Positions 1 through 11,604 of a DNA stretch of 64,000 nucleotides are shown one piece after another. The stretch is taken from assembly GCF_000150275.1 (NCBI RefSeq), contig NW_002060943.1:9394209-9458208 (forward strand), written 5' to 3'. Each line of letters opens with the position of its first letter. Position 1 is the stretch's first letter. This DNA comes from Trichoplax adhaerens. Its lineage: Eukaryota > Animalia > Placozoa. The notes beneath the pieces are model-generated. The model was not told the origin of the DNA and did no database searches. It worked only from the letters and a program-made list of their open reading frames with translations. The translations under genes were made by a program, and so were the position numbers.

Positions 1-3000
1 GTAACTTTAGTATAGGTATTACCTTTAAACAAATCACACAAAATCAACTGTCCGAAATTTGTAGTAATCCAAATACAACGTCACTTACCAGAGAATCTAT
101 ATCAACGCGTGAAAGCACATACGAAGCAAAACTGGGATTTCGATGTAATAATAAATACAACAAAAGGGTCGTTTCATCGGCATGTAATTCTCTAAAAAGT
201 CATTCACATAAATTTAGTAGAAGATAATATCTTAAAAACACCGGCTTCAAGGTTTAGATTTAAAATTACTTGCATATAGTATTGTACAGTTGACTCATAT
301 TGAATGATGAATCGTGCGGAGAGCTGGAAGGAGTGTCATCAGAATGTGCAGATTCGATCTCAACATTAACTGAAATATATATATATAAGCAAAGTTACTT
401 TAAATTTTATGCATTCCTAAATAAAAGAGATAATACAGAGGAATGAAATGTAACTACTGTACCATCAGATTCCTTAGCTCCAAGCCGAAATAATGAATGC
501 CTGAAAGGATTAAATTTTCCTTCATCTTGTATATGATGGCTAGATAAAGCTAATAATAGTAGCAAAGACTGTACTCCCAAAGGTGATTTGCGATTATCTT
601 CAGGAATTGCATTTGTCTTAGATACCATCGACCAAAGACCAGCTAAGAACATAAAATATTCACCATATTACAATTTACTAAAAGTACCGGGTTAGCACCG
701 CTTTACCACATACGTACAGGCTACAGCTGATCCAATGTTGTAAAATAATCCTGTATTAAGATACAAGGATATCTTCTTTGGCGGAGGTACTTGCTGAGTA
801 AAGTTATCAAGTAAAGACCGTACAACATTTTGAGCGACGCTAAAAAGTAGAAATGCAAGCAGATTTTAAGCACACTACAATAATAAAAACAGGCAATAGA
901 GAGTTTATCAGTTTATAGCTTCTTATACCCACGAATTTTCGTAAAAGTTTACCTCTTTTGAGCCATGATTACTTTATGAAACGGGCTATTGCACGATGTT
1001 TTTGGATTATAGATTTCGGCCGAAAGTAAACTTAATATAATATTGATGGCTTCGTAATGGATGTAGTAGGTATTTTTTCTATGTGTTATATTAGAATCAA
1101 ATGTGAGGATACGACATACCCATACGTTAAAAGCAAAGAATTAATGTTTTATTCAGTGTTTTCTTACATGATCGGAAAAGTTATAATTATATTCATTAAT
1201 TCCCTAATAAAGACCCTCAGTAACTCTAAAAAATTTATGATAACTAGTATCAATCTTCCTTATCATATAATTTACGATATGTCAAGGTAATAAAACCTAA
1301 TGCTGCATGGCATTAAATCCAAACCTTATCGTTATACTTACTTTCTTCTGGTATCAGTCTAATATCATTATTTGATTGCAAGTCTTTCTCATCGTCATTT
1401 AAATTTTGGTCTCTGATCTCGCTATTTACAGATATTATTGTATCTGTCAATTTGGCTACGTTAGTTTCTTTCTTTCTTTCGTCATCACATTCAGATACTT
1501 TCTTTTTATTAACGGAATCTTCCTTAGTCTAATTAAGTTAAAGGAAATTAAATTTTGATAATCATAATAAATCTGTCATTTCAGTAGATGTAAAACTAAA
1601 AGTTAAAGCAATCATCTAAAAGCATTTAAAAAGTTTAATTACATCATTAATGATAAATATCTATTTTAGCTATCCACAAATATTACAGTATAGAAGTCAT
1701 GAAGTTCCAATTGTAACGAAACCATCATTCATAAATTTACCTCATGAATGAATCTAATTTGAGGATTACGCGGACTGGATAAGAATTGCCTGACAATTGT
1801 TTCTTCCCGTAATACTTCAAACTGATACTTGCAGACGAACCGAATTATCAACAAGCAGTTGTACGTAATTAAAGCGCTATGGTTACTGTAATAGAGAAAA
1901 TGATTTCATTATGGTTGCATCCTGTTATGGAACACATAGTGATATCATTTAAATGGTTTTATATGAAGACAATCAGTATATCTTATGCAGTAAACTTTTG
2001 CGTACTTTTATAAAAGTTAAAAGGTACTGTATAGAAAATGATTAAAAACACACCATACACTGTTTAGTAACTATTCTTTTAGTATTGTTAATTGGATATG
2101 ATGACAGATAGCACAGTAAAATAATAATTATATTCATTACATTACAATACCCGCGTGATACTTTTAATCAAGAATAAAAAAATAGGTCAATGATATAACT
2201 TGTGATATTTTAAAATGCATGGTACTGTAATGGAAATGTCTAACTTGTCCACAATTATTGTAAACTACGAAAGTAGAAACTACCCAATAATGAAGTATTC
2301 ATGCGTATACAGTACTACAGTACTTTGCAGTACGAAATAACAACGCTATCAACTACCATAAAGTATATATTTTAAGCTAATAAACTAACTCGACGTATCT
2401 ATCGACTTTTATCCATTCCTGGATGTGGTTCAGTAAGAAACGAATCATCGTACCAAAGTTGCCAGTCGACAGATTATTCCTTGCTATAAAGTGCAATATG
2501 CAATATTAGCAAATGTAGCGCTGAGTTGAATGAATTTATTATAGTCAATTCTATTACGTAGTCGGTGCGAGTCCTCTAAGTATAATTAATAAGGTGAAGG
2601 TAGCGTAGCTTACCAAAAACAATGTTGATCGATCGAATTGACTCCTCCACGTTCTTTTCTGCACAGCTATTTAAACAAAAAGTCAGTAATGTAGCTTAAT
2701 CGCTGTGCTTGCAATTGTGTTTTTGATTCTAATATAGCTATGAGATTGTGATTGGCTATTGTATTAAATAAAGGTCTTACCAGTCATATTGGCATGCAAA
2801 GCTACAAAACCGTATTTAATTTAAGTCAGTGGTACTGCATGCAAAATTTGTGAAATGGCGAACATACGTTTAGGTTCGACCATTAATTAAGCCCACATTA
2901 GTAACATTACTATATTGCATCGATAAGACCTTAACCATGGATCACTGGAAGGAATCACTGTAGTCTACGCTATATCGCAGGTTCGAAATGTACTCGTATA

Positions 3001-3676
3001 TTTGTTTGAAGCTCGTATTTTGCGGTATGCACTAACTTACAGTATGCAATATGTGTAGAGTGCAGTAGCATATAGTATAATTGTTTACTAGTAGAATATT
3101 GTAATACTGCCGTGTACAATGTACATTGTACAGCTCACTATCATACAGTAGCTCTACTTATCCACTAACTATTCGTGCAGAAGAAGAAGAGATATAAAAA
3201 CGTTTGTAATTAATAATACTAAGGAATTGAAGACCAATACTTGGGAATAATGATATGATACGAAGGTGTCATTCGAGCAAAAATGGATGAGGACGTGTCA
3301 TAACGTATTCATGATTATGATAGCACCAGGTGCAGATGATTCGGCTACTTTCAGATGCTGACCATTTTCTGTAATATTTTTTAAGGGTAAAATGTAGCAT
3401 ATTTCTGGTAAGAAAGCTACGAGGTGCAACCGAAGGCTCAGTTTTCAATTTACTTTTATAGTTAACAAATAACATTGGTAGATTGTCATCATTCAGCATT
3501 TAAGTGAAAACCTGTGCACTCGCAATGTGTTACCTTGAGCTTGGTGATATCCAATGAAACGTTAGGAATTCCAACCAAAAGCCATCATGAAGGTCAATCG
3601 AAACTTGGCCTATTAATCTTTGAATACAGGGATTACTATCCAAATCGTTAAGACTACCTGACCAACTGGCTCCCAT
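1..3676 (-). CDS. DYM: Dymeclin, multi-exon; 3' part continues beyond the left window edge
   Basis: ATG at 3676. Exon 1 (3534-3676) reads MGASWSGSLNDLDSNPCIQRLIGQVSIDLHDGFWLEFLTFHW, with an N-myristoylation-type MGxxxS start. Later exons give RNNLSTGNFGTMIRF (~2390-2483), NHSALITYNCLLIIRFVCKY (~1741-1886), KNTYYIHYEAINIILSLLSAEI (~953-1078) and ADETTLLLYLLLHRNPSFASYVLSRVDIDSL (~89-191). These match recalled human DYM segments (DPFWNQLLSF, NNPRTGNLGAL, ATLLLYTLLHQN). Introns are GT-AG. Confidence 0.93.
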
Positions 3677-3894
3677 TTTTTAAACTTTTACGTTTTTAAC
3701 AGTAAACATCGACACCAAAATTCCAAATACTCTTTCGTAAACTATAGTACGAATAAACTAACTATACCTGTGGTACATGTAAAACAACTTTCTATCGTAT
3801 CAAGTTGCTGTCTGCTCTCGACACTCAACTAGTAAGCCTTCGTTACTCTGCGCTGACATGCGTATTAGCTATTTACAGTTTGAGAAGTTCTCCG

Positions 3895-4490
3895 TTACAG
3901 TACTGTACAGTACTGTACAGTACTATAATGTACTGTACAATGTACTGTACACCGTACTGTACATCTAGGGTCTTGGCTCACTTCGCTGGCAGTGGCAGAG
4001 GTACGTACAGTATACAGTACGCTGGTATTAAGACTAGTTCATGTATGTTCTGTAATAATAACAGGTAATCGGTCGAATAATAGGTGTGTATTAGCGTGTT
4101 GATAAATTTCTACTGAATGTGGTGAGATAGCTGAGAGGCAATATTATATTCATTTGCACGACATCGTGTGGCCGGTTAACTTTAAGCTAGTTATTGATAA
4201 ATTTATGCATAGTACAGTATATTGTGCACAACGCTAACTGTTATAGGAATTACAGTATTAAAAAGATAGAGGTGGCCGGAAATAATCATTTAATACTGTG
4301 CGTATACTGTACTACGGTAATACCGTACTGTACTGTACTGTATGTGGAGATCGACTGGTCGACCATTTGAATGATCACTTCAAGAGACCTGTGTACAGTA
4401 CAGTCGTTTCCAGCCTGTACTGTACACTGTAGACCATACGAGAATACTGTACGCTTTCAGTGGTACAGTACAGTACAGTACTGTAGAATG
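3895..4490. repeat. Palindromic TACAGTACTGTA/TGTACA-rich low-complexity tracts upstream of DYM
   Basis: Dense tiling of TACAG/CTGTA pentamers at 3895-3962, 4305-4345 and 4390-4485, visible directly. Confidence 0.8.
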
Positions 4491-6084
4491 AGCAGAAAAA
4501 TGATAGGCCTCCGCGCTTCTTTGCACAGCGTACTTTTTTACTCGTGGTCTTATGTCATATGTACTTTAGTATACTGTACTTCTCTTTTTCATTTTTTTAT
4601 TTGTTTAATGTTCACAGAGTAAGTAAGTACACAGTGCTCATCTGTGCTCTATCATAAACTATTAAAAAGAAAGAGGCGGACAGAAAACGGTCGTTCACTA
4701 TCCTAATAATGTGAAGGCTGATTATTTTACTGGTCATTTCAACTGTATTGCATGTCTTCAATTGACATCCAAATTAGCTGCAAACATGCTCCTGAGTTGG
4801 TTTTGTGCAGTATGGTATACGGTTTCATTGACACAGTATAGTAGAATGATCGCAAAGATGATAAACCTCCACATTATTTTGTAGTGAAAGTAGTTTCTCG
4901 TCCCTTCCTTTCTTTTTGCATAGTGCACTGCCAGGGACTACTAAATAAGAAAGAAACGGGACTGCCACCAGTGCAAAATACTGCGGAGGCTTAGCATTTT
5001 TCCCCTCATTCTACTATACGGTACCAATAAAACTGTATACCATACTGCACAAAACCAACCTAGCAGCTTATTTGGTTATCAATCCCAGACAGCATAGTAT
5101 GTATGCCGTTTACAGATATACGAATTCAATTGAAATGGCTAGTAAAATAATCAGCTTCCACATTATTAGTACTGGTGTAGACAGCAGTCAACAAACGTTG
5201 GCAGTCGCGCTTCTTTCTGCAGTATTGTATTGTCTCGTCTCGGACGGTCGGATATTTGGACCTTATATCGCCTTGTTCAAAGACTTTAACTAGTTATTAT
5301 GAAGAAAATAGACGTCGCACGCAGATTTTAATTGATGAACTATGTTATTTAGCTTTTCTCTACCGATTGATGTATAATTTGTGCAGAATAAAGGGGTTCC
5401 TTGATTTTGCTCGTTAAAATTTATCGGCTAAAATATCTTAGACATACTGTACTGTACAGTACTGTACCTTTATGGTTATACTGTAACATTCATTAAGTCG
5501 AATTCTATCTTAAGTACAGTATATCACTTATTTTTCTAACAAAAGTGAAGTAATATTATTCTATTTTACTAAATTGTGCTTGAAAGAAGTTATATAGCGT
5601 TATAAATGCTTTTTGAATTGGTAGAAGCAATTAAAGAAAAGTAGACACAGAAGATCCATACCAATTACCCGTTGTCGTTACTCAATAAAGTAGTTGTTGG
5701 CGTTATTTACTGTATGTACTGTACAGTAGAGTACAGTGTACGGTACAGTTGTTCAGAAAAGTCTGTCCATCCGAAGAGTATTCTGTCCAGGTGCAAGGTA
5801 GATCTTTGTCTTCCATAACTGTGAACTTTATTTTAGGAGTCTCCGCTGTACTTGACGTAGGGCTAAGGAGTCACAGACTAATTGACACAGTTACAGATGT
5901 CATATTCTGCTATAATGTAACGTATAGATCCAATTTTACACTGTGTACAGTATTGTACTTTATTTACTGTTTTTATCAGACTGTACTACTCATCAGCAGA
6001 AGTAGGCTATATTACTATGCGCTACAGCATGCAGTACAGTACTACAATGACAACGATGTGCTATTTCTGTTGAATGGCTAGAGC

Positions 6085-6235
6085 TAGCCAATCATCATCT
6101 TTAAGTGCCAATCATTGTCTACAAACCACTTTGAAGACTGCGTCTTAGCGTCTAGACACCCCACGTGATTCAATTAACCAATAAATTTAACGAGTAACCT
6201 TCATCAAAGCTGTGCCTGTCAGGAGACTGTCTGAC
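6085..6235 (+). promoter_or_regulatory. Putative I-Smad proximal promoter: CCAAT boxes, palindromic Smad-binding element, E-box, AP-1-like site
   Basis: CCAAT at ~6088, ~6108 and ~6178; GTCTAGAC 6150-6157; CACGTG 6162-6167; TGATTCA 6166-6172; extra AGAC/GTCT pairs at ~6135-6145 and ~6224-6232. About 330 bp upstream of the ATG. Confidence 0.65.
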
Positions 6236-6483
6236 CGAAGTGACTGCTGGCTTTTTTATTCAAGGTTACCAGTAGGGTAGCGAGAAACAAATCGACGGTT
6301 TAGATTCTAAGTGTATTGCCATTTTTTTTTACGTCTATCGGAAAAAGTGTGCATTATTGTTTGGGAATATAGACGTGTTAAGAAGGCACGCTGTACATTT
6401 GGTCTCCAACTCTGTAGCGGATGAAACGCGCTTAAAGCTACCGTCAAGTCTTCATGACGATTTTTCTGGATATTAATAAATGA

Positions 6484-9400
6484 ATGTTTAGGAGAAAGCG
6501 GAACAACTTGTTCAGGCGATTGTGGCGGTGTCGGGCAAGCAAAATTGTGAATGACCCGACGAATAGTGATCATGACACCGCCCGTTCGCCATCATCACAA
6601 CTTCAATCACCTTCGGCATCGATTAATTCGGAATCTATCAATAATTTCTTATTAAAAAATTTCAATGATGAACAACTGAAACGCACTGTCTATGGCTTAT
6701 TGAAAAGTATTTCCATCAAGCAGTTCGAGAATTTAGTAAAATGTATCGAATCCCGCGGTGGTATCAAGTCGAACTGTATAGTAACGACAAGCAAGGTCCA
6801 AATTAGACACAGCGATGGTACAACTATGGACGTAAAGTTTCATGTATTACTGTCTTGTCTTTTTCGTTGGCCCGATATGATAGGAGAGGATTATGAACTA
6901 AAGAGATTGGCAACATGTACCACCTGCATTGAAAACGATTTAGATGAAATAACTGGTATTACTCCAGCACCTTCAGATCTTCACTTAGTTTGTATAAACC
7001 CACACCATTATGGCCGTATAAATCTACAAGGTATGATGGAAGGCTCTCGTAAGCGTCAACTTTGGTTGATTTGTAAATTTAATTTACAATATCTTCGTCT
7101 CTTATCCTTACTGTGCTATTTTCTGTTTCATACAGTAATTGCAACAGTTTTAAAAAATGTAAGATGGTACAAGAATGCAACCTCTTACGTTACTTATCTT
7201 TTCTAATTTCTTAGAATCTGTGCCATCACCTTACGTTATCTACCAATTAAATGATTTACCCTGTGATTCTACTGAAGCAGGTAAGCGTTCATTGAGATAA
7301 TTAAGCGTCCGGTATATTCTCTCTAAGTAGCGACACCTTCTGTTCTGTTTGTCTAGCAGTTAGCTAGGTACCGTTTATTCAATTTTAAGAATGAAAGTTT
7401 CACCGTTAGTTAATTTCAGCATAACATGATGAATAATGGCTGTGATTTACCTTGTTGCCGACACATTGTCTTAATATGAACAGTCGGTGTAGAATGCGCT
7501 TAAGCGTTTATTAATGTTACGAATGAATTATAGCCATGTTACACAAGTTATGGTACCGTAGTACTCGACAGACCTCATTGATACTGTGGTTAGTGAACTA
7601 CAGTACTGCTGCAGACAGTAAACATTAAATTAATTTACTGTTAGACTTGATAAAAAATTCAAAGAGCGTAAATATAATAATGAACGTAGCAATGATTGAA
7701 AAGAAGTGGCTAAGTGTAGTAATGTCTTGTCTAGTATAAGGGAAAATTTTAAGAATTGCGCTATAATTAAAATTTGCTTTTAAATTTTAATCTTCCAGTG
7801 CTTGATAATACTTCTCCGTTTATCGCGTCGGCTTTAAAAACAAAATTTTGTGTTACAGAATTTAATTTTAGATAATTTTCTTATTTTAGATTCGAGCAAT
7901 CCGTCAATATCATTTGATTCTGCTGGTAAAAGTTTCGGTACGTAGAGTAAATAAGACGTGAACATATTCCTAATTCTAATTATATAATTCTTCTACAGTT
8001 TATGAAATAAACGTTTAAGTAGACTACGTTTGATGATATTGTGTCGTGGAACTACAAAACGCCTTCAATTTTCTTGTAAATACCGTCTGAGAACATCGCA
8101 ATTTTTTCTATATTTGATTTCATTTTATATTATATTTTTTTTATACGGACTTTACGCTGATAAAACTCTTTCCAGTTAATAAATAACACCATACGAAATA
8201 CTGTACTGGACAGTTCTGAAAGCGTACCAAAATAACACAGTGATATGTACCGTACAGTACCATACTATACGGTAGAGTACTGAGTACTGTATTATGTGAT
8301 CTTCTACTCTAGAAATTCTTTTTTGATAACATCGAGATTGAAAGTTAAGTGCGCGGTACAGTACACCACTGTACATACTATTTCATAGAATCAAATGCTT
8401 ACTTTATAACGTTCTAATAAATAATTAGAATTAATAATAAAACAATAAATAAATAAAATAAAATCAATCAACTGAACATTTAGATCAGCGTTAGTGCTGC
8501 TAGCCTAAATAAAACCTTACAGGTACTATGAATTATCTTTAATGCAAGCTCACCTACCAACTGTTGGGATAGATCTAAAAACTTTTTCTGATCTCGACGA
8601 TATTTTTATTCCTGACTGTAATGTAGTCAGTTACCTAGTCGTAGAAGAGTCTATGACAAAATTGATGTTTACAGTATTGAGATCGATCTGTCTCCTGTGT
8701 TTAATTGCTATTCATCAAACAATCAATGTAGCGGAAAGAGTATGTCTAGCGGCTGCTAGCTCCATTACTTAGGCACCATACGCTCTACTTTTTAAATCTG
8801 ATGTAGCATTATCAGCGGTTTATTCTTATACTGTAGTAGAGCTAATCTAAGATAACTTCTATTCATCGAATTTGTATGGAACGAAATTTATTAACATATA
8901 ATACATGACATTTTAAGGTCTTTGTGATACAAACTAGTGATAAAATTTGCCTAATTTTTAGTATTTGATTTGGCCGTAAATCCTTGAATTCTTTAATTAA
9001 TGGACTAATAAAGGGTGGTTGTTGCCGACATGATCTGATCAGCACTCGTACTACTTCATGTTTTATAATGTTCGCATTATGATCTTGTTGTAGTAGTATA
9101 TATTTGACGTTTTTGTTTCTATTTCTATATAAAGATGATCATTCATCGTATTCGTCAATATGTAAAGCTTCTTTCGATAGCAGTTGGTGTGCTATCGCGT
9201 ATTGGGAATTTCGTGAACGTGTTGGTAGAATATTTGATGTTAAAAGTTCAACCGTCAATATTTTTCAACAACTGCCTGAAGGAGAAGGATTTTGGTTAGG
9301 TGCCCTAAACCGTGATGGTGTTTCTGGAAATATTTCCAATACTGATTCGAATCAGTGTGATAGCCGAGTATTCCACCGTATCGGCTACGGATTGCAACTA

Positions 9401-9712
9401 TCGCGTGAAGATGATTCTGTATGGATTTATAACCGCAGTGAGCATCCTTTATATGTTAATAGCCCATTGTATAATAAAAATATTCAATCGACTCATAACA
9501 CGGAAGTTAAAAAGGTCCAACCTGGATACTCATTAAAGGTATTTAACTATGCTAGAGTTGATATGCCTCAGCAGATAAGGCCATACGTTGGTCCAAGATA
9601 CCCTTATTCGATACGTATTAGTTTTGTGAAAGGTTGGGGTCGTAATTATACTAGGCAGTTTATTACGTCATGTCCATGTTGGTTAGAAATTTTACTCAAT
9701 GTATCGCACTGA
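6484..9712 (+). CDS. SMAD6/7: Inhibitory Smad (Smad6/7); exons 6484-7030, 7215-7280, 7890-7925 (or -7937), 9135-9712
   Basis: N-terminal MFRRKRNNLFRRLWR is the I-Smad signature. Degenerate MH1 (LFRWPD...ELKRL...VCINPHHY) and MH2 (WCAIAYWEFRERVGR...YNRSEHPLYVNSP...SIRISFVKGWGRNYTRQFITSCPCWLEILL). No C-terminal SSXS. All three introns are phase 1 GT-AG and keep the frame. Confidence 0.96.
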
Positions 9713-11604
9713 CAAATTGACTTACTTGATTGATGAATATATTTTAATTTGAACATATTTTACGAGAATAGCGTCTTGATACTTGTGCTGTCATCTTTGA
9801 ATCGCAATACTATCTTCTTGCCGCTGTCTCTTTAAAGTTAACATATTCTTTGTCGCTAATATCAAAGTTTTAAGGAACGGTAGTATTCTAAGATAATATT
9901 TTATGATCTGTTAGATAACCGAGATCGTTAAGAATTACTCGTTATCGCTAAGGCAAATCGAATCTACTTCTTTGCCAAGCGATTATAACGATATTGCTTT
10001 TTACTGTAGAACGATTTAGAAGACTGTAAAATTTTTAGCTACGTCTGTTGTGAATATAGATTGTTGTATATTGCTTCTCACCATTGGATGGTAAAGATAT
10101 AATTTCCTTCAATCTAAGAAAAGAAATTTGATTTTCTCTTATATCTCTTTATTTTTCCTACCCTTTGCACTGCTCTTGTAATTTATCTCCATTGTATATA
10201 TAATATATACGTAATTATTGGTATCAATATTTATCAGCTGTAATATTTGGTATTTATGTATTATCATGTATACTTTGGTACAGTACTTTTGATCCAGTTA
10301 ACGCTTTAGCACGCTATTGTATTAGTACTATGATGCTATCTAACGTAAAATACCAGATATATTTTACTCTGTACCACTGCTTCAAATATGTCCGGTACAA
10401 CAAACTTTTCAATCAAGTTTAAGCATACGGTTACACCCGTATACAGTACCATAAATATTTCACTGTATATTTAATAAGAAAGTGAAATCGCTGGTCACGG
10501 TTAGCGGTGAACTTCTACTAATTCATGACAACCTTGATTATATATGATAGCAACAATCGTCTATTTGACTACAGGAATCAAATGCCTGTTCTATTAATAT
10601 TTGAAAGAAATGTTCGTTTAATTAATTATTTTCGTGGATAAAATGAAGCCGGAGGTGCTTGCTTTTGTATTATGTTTGACATAAATAATTTCAGAAAGAT
10701 TTCTTCAATTAAAATTATATATTTATTACTTGAAGAGAATGGTTTCATTCGCAAGATGCTGTGACTAATTTCTTGCATGCCCTTAGGCCTTAGCACCTTG
10801 GTTTATTTACAGTAGAGTGTGTGGTAAATTAATGTGCAAGGCCTTTTTCAGTATTTCGATATACTATTGACTGTTGTACAATGTACAGTACTGTACTTGT
10901 CGAGTTCATTTGCACGTAATGGAACGGTATGTACCTTTACCACTTACCGCAAAGGCTTATTTAAGTGATTAGTTATAACTAATTGTGAAGCAGTAGTAGA
11001 ACGCCGTAGAACTCGTTGCCGTAAGTACTCCTTGCAATCAGTCTACAGTAGGCACCCGTTCAGTTTACCGAAGTGATAGCGATGCACAGGAAATGATTTG
11101 GTCAATTTCTGGTAGCCCGGGCGAATTTATTGTTGCTTGCAGACTCTAAAGTACCCAGATTGTCCGAAAATTTACTTGCTGTAAACTTAGGTTGATTGCA
11201 GATCTAGACGTGGACAACACTGCCATCGTAAAGCATAAAATCTGTTTTCCGTCGCTATGTATAATTATAGTACTTCACATAGCGATCTCTAATTATGATT
11301 TTCTGCGTGCAGATTATGCGTTTAGGACTTGAAAGTCTACGCTTCGGTACATAATCGTACTGTACACTGTACAGCACTAAATGAAACTAATTAAGCAATT
11401 GATATATTGATACGAGATTCCACAACTGAGGAAGAAGTTAATTTACAGTTAATTTATTTACTGTAATTAATAACTGTAGTTCTTTTATTTAAAATATATT
11501 TATGATGTGTATCAGGCTTTACGAAATAATGTATGTTAACTGAGTCGCTGAGTTAAGGTTAAGAACCTGGTCAAACTGAACTTCAGCCTAAACTCTGAGG
11601 TAGG

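Follow-up and report, generated by a model that had tools for sequence, protein, structure and literature searches.

The window, a 64,000-nt stretch of the Trichoplax adhaerens genome (105.6 Mb in 1,414 contigs), contains an inhibitory Smad (I-Smad) gene on the plus strand and, upstream of it, dymeclin (DYM) on the minus strand. The two genes are in head-to-head orientation with 2.8 kb between them; DYM has its first coding exon at 3530–3676, and the start of this exon is at 3676 (MGASWSG..., MGASWSGSLNDLDSNP). The region 6085–6235, in which no TATA box is found, is the proximal promoter and start zone of the sole inhibitory-Smad gene of this animal. Read directly from the sequence, it holds the composite GTCTAGAC-ACCC-CACGTG-ATTCA at 6150–6172. 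The motif, the three CCAAT boxes and the extra AGAC/GTCT pairs described in the initial annotation were all recovered in place. The features, in window coordinates, are:

6088–6092, plus strand: CCAAT box 1 (AGCCAATCA), in a good context for an NF-Y-type site
6108–6112, plus strand: CCAAT box 2 (TGCCAATCA), 20 bp past box 1
6117–6120: single GTCT Smad-binding core
6135–6145: inverted pair of Smad cores, AGAC-TGC-GTCT
6145–6218, plus strand: approximate zone in which I-Smad RNA contigs start (runs X20 and X19)
6150–6157: GTCTAGAC, a perfect 8-bp palindrome and predicted Smad-binding element
6158–6161: ACCC spacer, 4 bp
6162–6167: CACGTG E-box, its C...A flanks shared with human SMAD7; CCAAT box 3 follows after 10 bp
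6166–6172: TGATTCA, a weak AP-1-like heptamer with one mismatch, overlapping the E-box
6168–6172: ATTCA
6178–6182, plus strand: CCAAT box 3 (AACCAATAA)
6224–6232: inverted pair of Smad cores, AGAC-T-GTCT, within the 5' UTR of both RNA contigs
6484–7030, plus strand: I-Smad coding exon 1, MFRRKRN... N-terminus, degenerate MH1
7215–7280, plus strand: I-Smad exon 2, from RNA contig joints (GT..AG)
7890–7937, plus strand: I-Smad exon 3, from RNA contig joints (GT..AG)
9135–9712, plus strand: last I-Smad coding exon, MH2, ending in ...SCPCWLEILLNVSH, stop codon at 9710–9712

The ATG at 6484 opens a spliced, expressed inhibitory Smad of 412 codons, and GTCTAGAC lies approximately 330 bp upstream of it. 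RNA contigs from two RNA-seq runs define three introns with GT..AG borders. In protein searches run on the individual exons, the MH1 match of exon 1 is weak (7e-17) and the MH2 match of the last exon covers the full domain (5e-45). Proteins named Smad6 by their sources align at both the N-terminus (MFRRKRN..RRLWR) and the C-terminus (SCPCWLEILLN), and the closest relatives of the exons carry that name, in agreement with the initial annotation that the gene downstream of the motif is an inhibitory Smad. Searching the whole genome with MH1 and MH2 models returns four Smad genes, only one of them inhibitory; the published number for Trichoplax is also four (PMC2657120). The MH2-exon search yielded an 84%-identical protein (P0001) in ENA contigs of at most 4.5 kb, indicating that a diverged placozoan copy exists in public data. 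A metagenome scan with exon 1 returned only an unrelated eukaryotic R-Smad (L002), which has neither motif. A three-codon upstream open reading frame (ATG AAT GTT TAG) at 6480–6491 overlaps the I-Smad ATG out of frame.

The intergenic segment between DYM and I-Smad is full of high-copy TACAGTAC/GTACTGTAC-rich repeats from 3800 to 5750, especially at 4197–4590 and 5379–5772. Summed over these repeats, depth in a DNA run reaches 1,000–3,300, compared with 33 for single-copy sequence. Contigs break and join repeatedly at 4463–4487 and 5443–5467, and RNA contigs map to the repeats as well; the segment has the appearance of a dispersed, high-copy element whose ends are defined. The interval 6030–6300 has one copy in the genome. 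In human, DYM neighbours SMAD7 in tandem orientation, so the linkage is kept between the two animals and the orientation is not. A Smad2/3-type R-Smad gene, read from three loci (L006, L007 and L013), lies on the same contig, outside the window and 80–92 kb beyond I-Smad, on the minus strand (G000:C1414:9483384-9486380). This placozoan linkage of an R-Smad with an I-Smad recalls the human linkages SMAD2-SMAD7 (18q21) and SMAD3-SMAD6 (15q22).

The position of the promoter is given by RNA contigs in which exon 1 is spliced to exon 2. These begin at 6218 in run X19 and at 6145 in run X20; both runs come from organism B, a near relative differing by about 1%. No RNA contig in either run joins an exon upstream of exon 1, and RNA depth in the bin 5773–5969 is 0 in X19 and 3, a trace, in X20. 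Depth over the introns is some 10% of that over the exons, a level that suggests pre-mRNA and not carried-over DNA. Since assembled contigs cannot give true starts, we place initiation in a zone of approximately 6145–6218. The RNA starts and the lack of an upstream exon identify the region as the proximal promoter, so the motif does lie in the I-Smad promoter, as had been claimed, and the RNA data do not put the start of transcription elsewhere. The palindrome and E-box are approximately 50–70 bp upstream of the RNA end at 6218 and just inside the RNA end at 6145. Because the X20 contig begins 5 bp upstream of the palindrome, the sites may be inside some transcripts rather than upstream of them. 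In a further run, X12 (a 2023 library of unspecified type, 44 Mb of contigs), depth over 5570–9343 falls from approximately 17–20 at the promoter to 3–8 at the last exon, a profile such as an accessibility or promoter-mark library might give, contig depths being too crude for a firm reading. Between 5413 and 6584, the only difference among those listed for organism B (runs X5, X12, X19 and X20) is a 1-bp deletion at 6322; with a divergence of only about 1%, this comparison is uninformative on constraint.

The Smad cores in the promoter total seven GTCT/AGAC motifs, arranged as three inverted pairs, with GTCTAGAC among the three. No match to GGCGCC, GGCGC or GRCGNC-N5-GTCT was found in 3676–9900, and any Smad response of the promoter would, judging from the motifs present, run via GTCT-type sites. 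The AP-1-like heptamer differs at one position from TGA(C/G)TCA, and the window has 14 copies of it. Between the E-box and CCAAT box 3, the interval 6168–6177 holds CAATTAA, with a homeodomain-type TAATTG core on the other strand, a possible further input to the promoter.

We asked how often the composite occurs elsewhere. The initial annotation had proposed a genome-wide count of the palindrome, a short spacer and the E-box. Run with a spacer of 0–10 nt, the pattern GTCTAGAC-N(0-10)-CACGTG has one copy in the genome, and this sole match is the one in the I-Smad promoter. With CACGTG first and the same spacer range before GTCTAGAC, zero copies are present in 105.6 Mb. A backwards control pattern with N(0-10), in both orders, gives 3 + 2 copies genome-wide. 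The palindrome by itself occurs 672 times in 105.6 Mb, about once per 157 kb, and the control 645 times; the chance of finding it in a given 500 bp is therefore about 0.003. Only one of the 672 copies has an E-box within 10 bp. The palindrome is not enriched over the control, which gives no hint of a broad regulon built on GTCTAGAC. In the partial loci of the other three Smad genes, neither motif is found. The combination of an inverted pair and the palindrome within 30 bp has two copies in the genome; in the 3 kb at the second (L009), no gene could be recognised.

Dinucleotide shuffles of the window never produced the composite. Because G+C content is 43% in the promoter and 32% in the window, a local dinucleotide null is the strict one, and 6030–6300 (271 bp) was shuffled 20,000 times. 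At least seven Smad cores appeared in 188 of these 20,000 sequences, at least three inverted pairs in 4 (0.02%), GTCTAGAC in 113 (0.6%), at least three CCAAT boxes in 128, and CACGTG anywhere in the 271 bp in 1,367 (7%). On these counts, the chance of a palindrome with an adjacent E-box in this promoter is of the order of 1e-6 to 1e-5. It is very unlikely that the composite arose by chance.

The density of Smad cores is also unusual. Within the window, the I-Smad promoter is the sole site with at least five GTCT/AGAC cores per 116 bp, and it holds all seven of its cores in such a span; all three inverted pairs in the window with no more than 5 bp between the halves fall in this promoter. For comparison, 188 kb was sampled at fixed round coordinates on four large contigs, giving 252 kb together with the window. 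The sample contains no cluster of seven cores, and its one cluster of six is a tandem minisatellite. The I-Smad promoter is thus the densest non-repetitive cluster of Smad cores among the 252 kb. The only other dense GTCT/AGAC cluster there is the minisatellite L028:960-1300 (G000:C1414:4000960-4001300), which consists of units of approximately 35–47 bp, each with the palindrome AGACGTCT. Clusters of CCAAT boxes are common, at about 10 places per 188 kb of genome, so this part of the promoter consists of ordinary promoter elements.

Candidate factors for reading these sites are encoded in the genome. The MH1 domain of the Smad2/3-type gene has no insert and best matches SMAD3 structures (1e-48). 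A Smad1/5-type MH1 is also encoded, as is a third R/Co-Smad, which is taken for Smad4. The MH1 domain of Trichoplax Smad4 has been purified and crystallised; it shifts a canonical GTCT oligonucleotide in EMSA, and a solved structure shows it in complex with a GC site (PMC5727232). NF-YA is encoded at G000:C1407. MiT/TFE homologues are present in Trichoplax according to a review (PMC7815692); an exon-by-exon search of the whole genome with the MiT/TFE N-terminal model PF15951 was blank, as were the control genomes.

The architecture of the sequence, its statistical singularity, its position in the promoter, the expression and splicing of the gene and the presence of Smad and NF-YA genes are established by these data. 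We suggest, with a probability of about 0.55, that the I-Smad promoter responds to Smads in a negative-feedback loop and has an NF-Y/E-box core, a reading drawn from the arrangement of the sites. Ligand-activated complexes of R-Smad and Smad4 would bind the palindromic sites through their MH1 hairpins, a constitutive bHLH-ZIP factor of the MiT/TFE or USF type would occupy the E-box, and NF-Y would occupy the CCAAT boxes. Together, the Smads, the bHLH-ZIP factor and NF-Y would raise transcription of I-Smad, such that a TGF-beta-family pathway would induce its own inhibitor by the same logic as at mammalian SMAD7. We infer the Smad binding, the co-operation and the ligand response from the sites and the factors encoded.

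Much of the same architecture could serve a promoter that has functional elements and no Smad feedback. A housekeeping-type promoter driven by NF-Y and USF (or Myc/Max or MiT/TFE factors) would account for the encoded NF-YA, for CCAAT boxes of a kind that clusters commonly in this genome, and for an E-box 10 bp from CCAAT box 3, within the preferred distance of 10–12 bp (PMC4889920). The palindromes would then serve another factor or the positioning of the start, and the pair at 6224–6232 is indeed inside the transcript, with one RNA contig starting as far upstream as 6145. Since the gap between E-box and CCAAT box 3 is the preferred distance, the E-box has a partner that rivals the palindrome; it may belong to a generic NF-Y/USF core, its nearness to the palindrome being secondary, or it may have a dual use. 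What this explanation leaves unaccounted for is the densest cluster of Smad cores in 252 kb, with an optimal palindrome, at the orthologue of SMAD7, a gene that mammals control by way of that palindrome. We also know of no other factor that binds GTCTAGAC, which counts against it, and we consider it rather unlikely. A simpler proposal is coincidence, that a GC-richer promoter happens to hold SMAD7-like strings. The match was spotted after the fact, in a gene viewed with the SMAD7 module in mind; the promoter is above the window in G+C, and the palindrome is not over-represented genome-wide. Local shuffling, however, rarely returns the palindrome or three inverted pairs and returns an E-box in only 7% of sequences, the joint chance of the adjacent pair is minute, and the composite is single in 105.6 Mb. 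Coincidence is accordingly the least probable of the explanations that we weighed.

The Smad-responsive feedback promoter also has a stronger form, which does not exclude it: strict homology, in which I-Smad promoters would have retained the arrangement of Smad-binding element, spacer and E-box without a break from the common ancestor of placozoans and vertebrates onward. The sites follow the same order relative to transcription in both lineages with the same C/A flanks around the E-box, both modules are in the proximal promoter of an orthologous gene, and the linkage has an old look, with DYM adjacent and the Smad2/3-type gene on the same contig. Set against this, the spacers differ in length, and at Drosophila Dad and mammalian Smad6 it is GC-rich BMP elements that are in use. 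In the main text of the Nematostella pSMAD1/5 ChIP paper smad6 goes unmentioned, and given the age of both binding specificities the arrangement may have arisen repeatedly, under the same protein geometry. Strict homology therefore seems to us unlikely. More tentatively than the feedback promoter itself, and still as a doubtful proposition, GTCTAGAC with a short fixed spacer and CACGTG could be an ancestral animal cis-unit through which TGF-beta/activin signalling has controlled its own inhibitor since before the split between placozoans and bilaterians; if so, it would be among the oldest gene-specific enhancer layouts known.

In the literature searched, we found no description of a placozoan I-Smad promoter, and outside bilaterians the assumption of I-Smad feedback is based on the presence of the gene alone. 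With a promoter element that is short, single-copy and of defined layout, this assumption becomes directly testable in a placozoan. If the element is ligand-responsive, an early-branching animal would be shown to carry the feedback wiring in its cis-elements. The promoters of other placozoan genera and of cnidarians bear on whether an arrangement of transcription-factor sites can persist across so deep a split.

Among known elements, the closest counterpart is the SMAD7 promoter, for which the human comparison consists of short oligonucleotides printed in papers and matched by eye. In a published probe from human SMAD7 the sequence is GTCTAGAC-GGC-CACGTG-A, and that study also employed a promoter with a mutated E-box (PMC5889486); an AP-1 probe from a second study has this CACGTG at its start and opens with CACGTGACGA (PMC5918965). 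The mammalian module is thus as the initial annotation had described it. Titles cited in these papers state that the SMAD7 response element requires a functional Smad site and an E-box and that TFE3 and Smad3 act in synergy on Smad7 (PMC5889486, PMC11063908), and Smad3 and TFE3 are named as cofactors at PAI-1 and SMAD7 (PMC11063908). As in human SMAD7, a CACGTG with C...A flanks comes after the perfect GTCTAGAC in the direction of transcription, in the proximal promoter of an inhibitory Smad. The placozoan E-box is also overlapped on its 3' side by a weak AP-1-like heptamer. The proposed resemblance therefore stands for the palindrome, the order and the flanks. It is looser in the spacer, which is 4 bp (ACCC) in the placozoan and 3 bp (GGC) in human, and in the AP-1-like site, which is weak, reading TGATTCA where the AP-1/CRE-like site of the human sequence has TGACGA. 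The placozoan site is further distinguished by two more inverted pairs of Smad cores and three CCAAT boxes on its flanks. The position differs as well. In mouse Smad7 the module is located at about -179 from the start, further upstream than in the placozoan, where it is at or within approximately 70 bp of the RNA 5' ends.

The PE2 element of PAI-1 (SERPINE1) likewise has a Smad site adjoining a CACGTG E-box, in another gene and with AGAC half-sites rather than a full palindrome. Hua and colleagues are said to have found in 1999 that a 3-bp spacing mattered in this related element, a spacing that the 4-bp placozoan spacer does not match. The core of the promoter, TATA-less and with more than one CCAAT box, resembles NF-Y/USF promoters. 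For NF-Y with USF1/2 and MAX, human ChIP-seq data give 10–12 bp as the preferred distance between CACGTG and CCAAT (PMC4889920). In the placozoan the E-box ends at 6167 and the CCAAT box starts at 6178, leaving a gap of 10 bp (6168–6177) counted edge to edge, a measure that may differ from that of the human study. An NF-Y/USF module of this kind has no Smad sites, unlike the placozoan promoter. The BMP elements of Dad, Id and Smad6 combine a GC-rich site with GTCT at a fixed spacing, whereas the placozoan element is purely of the GTCT type; what they share is that a TGF-beta-family pathway appears to be wired to its own inhibitor, in the placozoan by candidate Smad sites.
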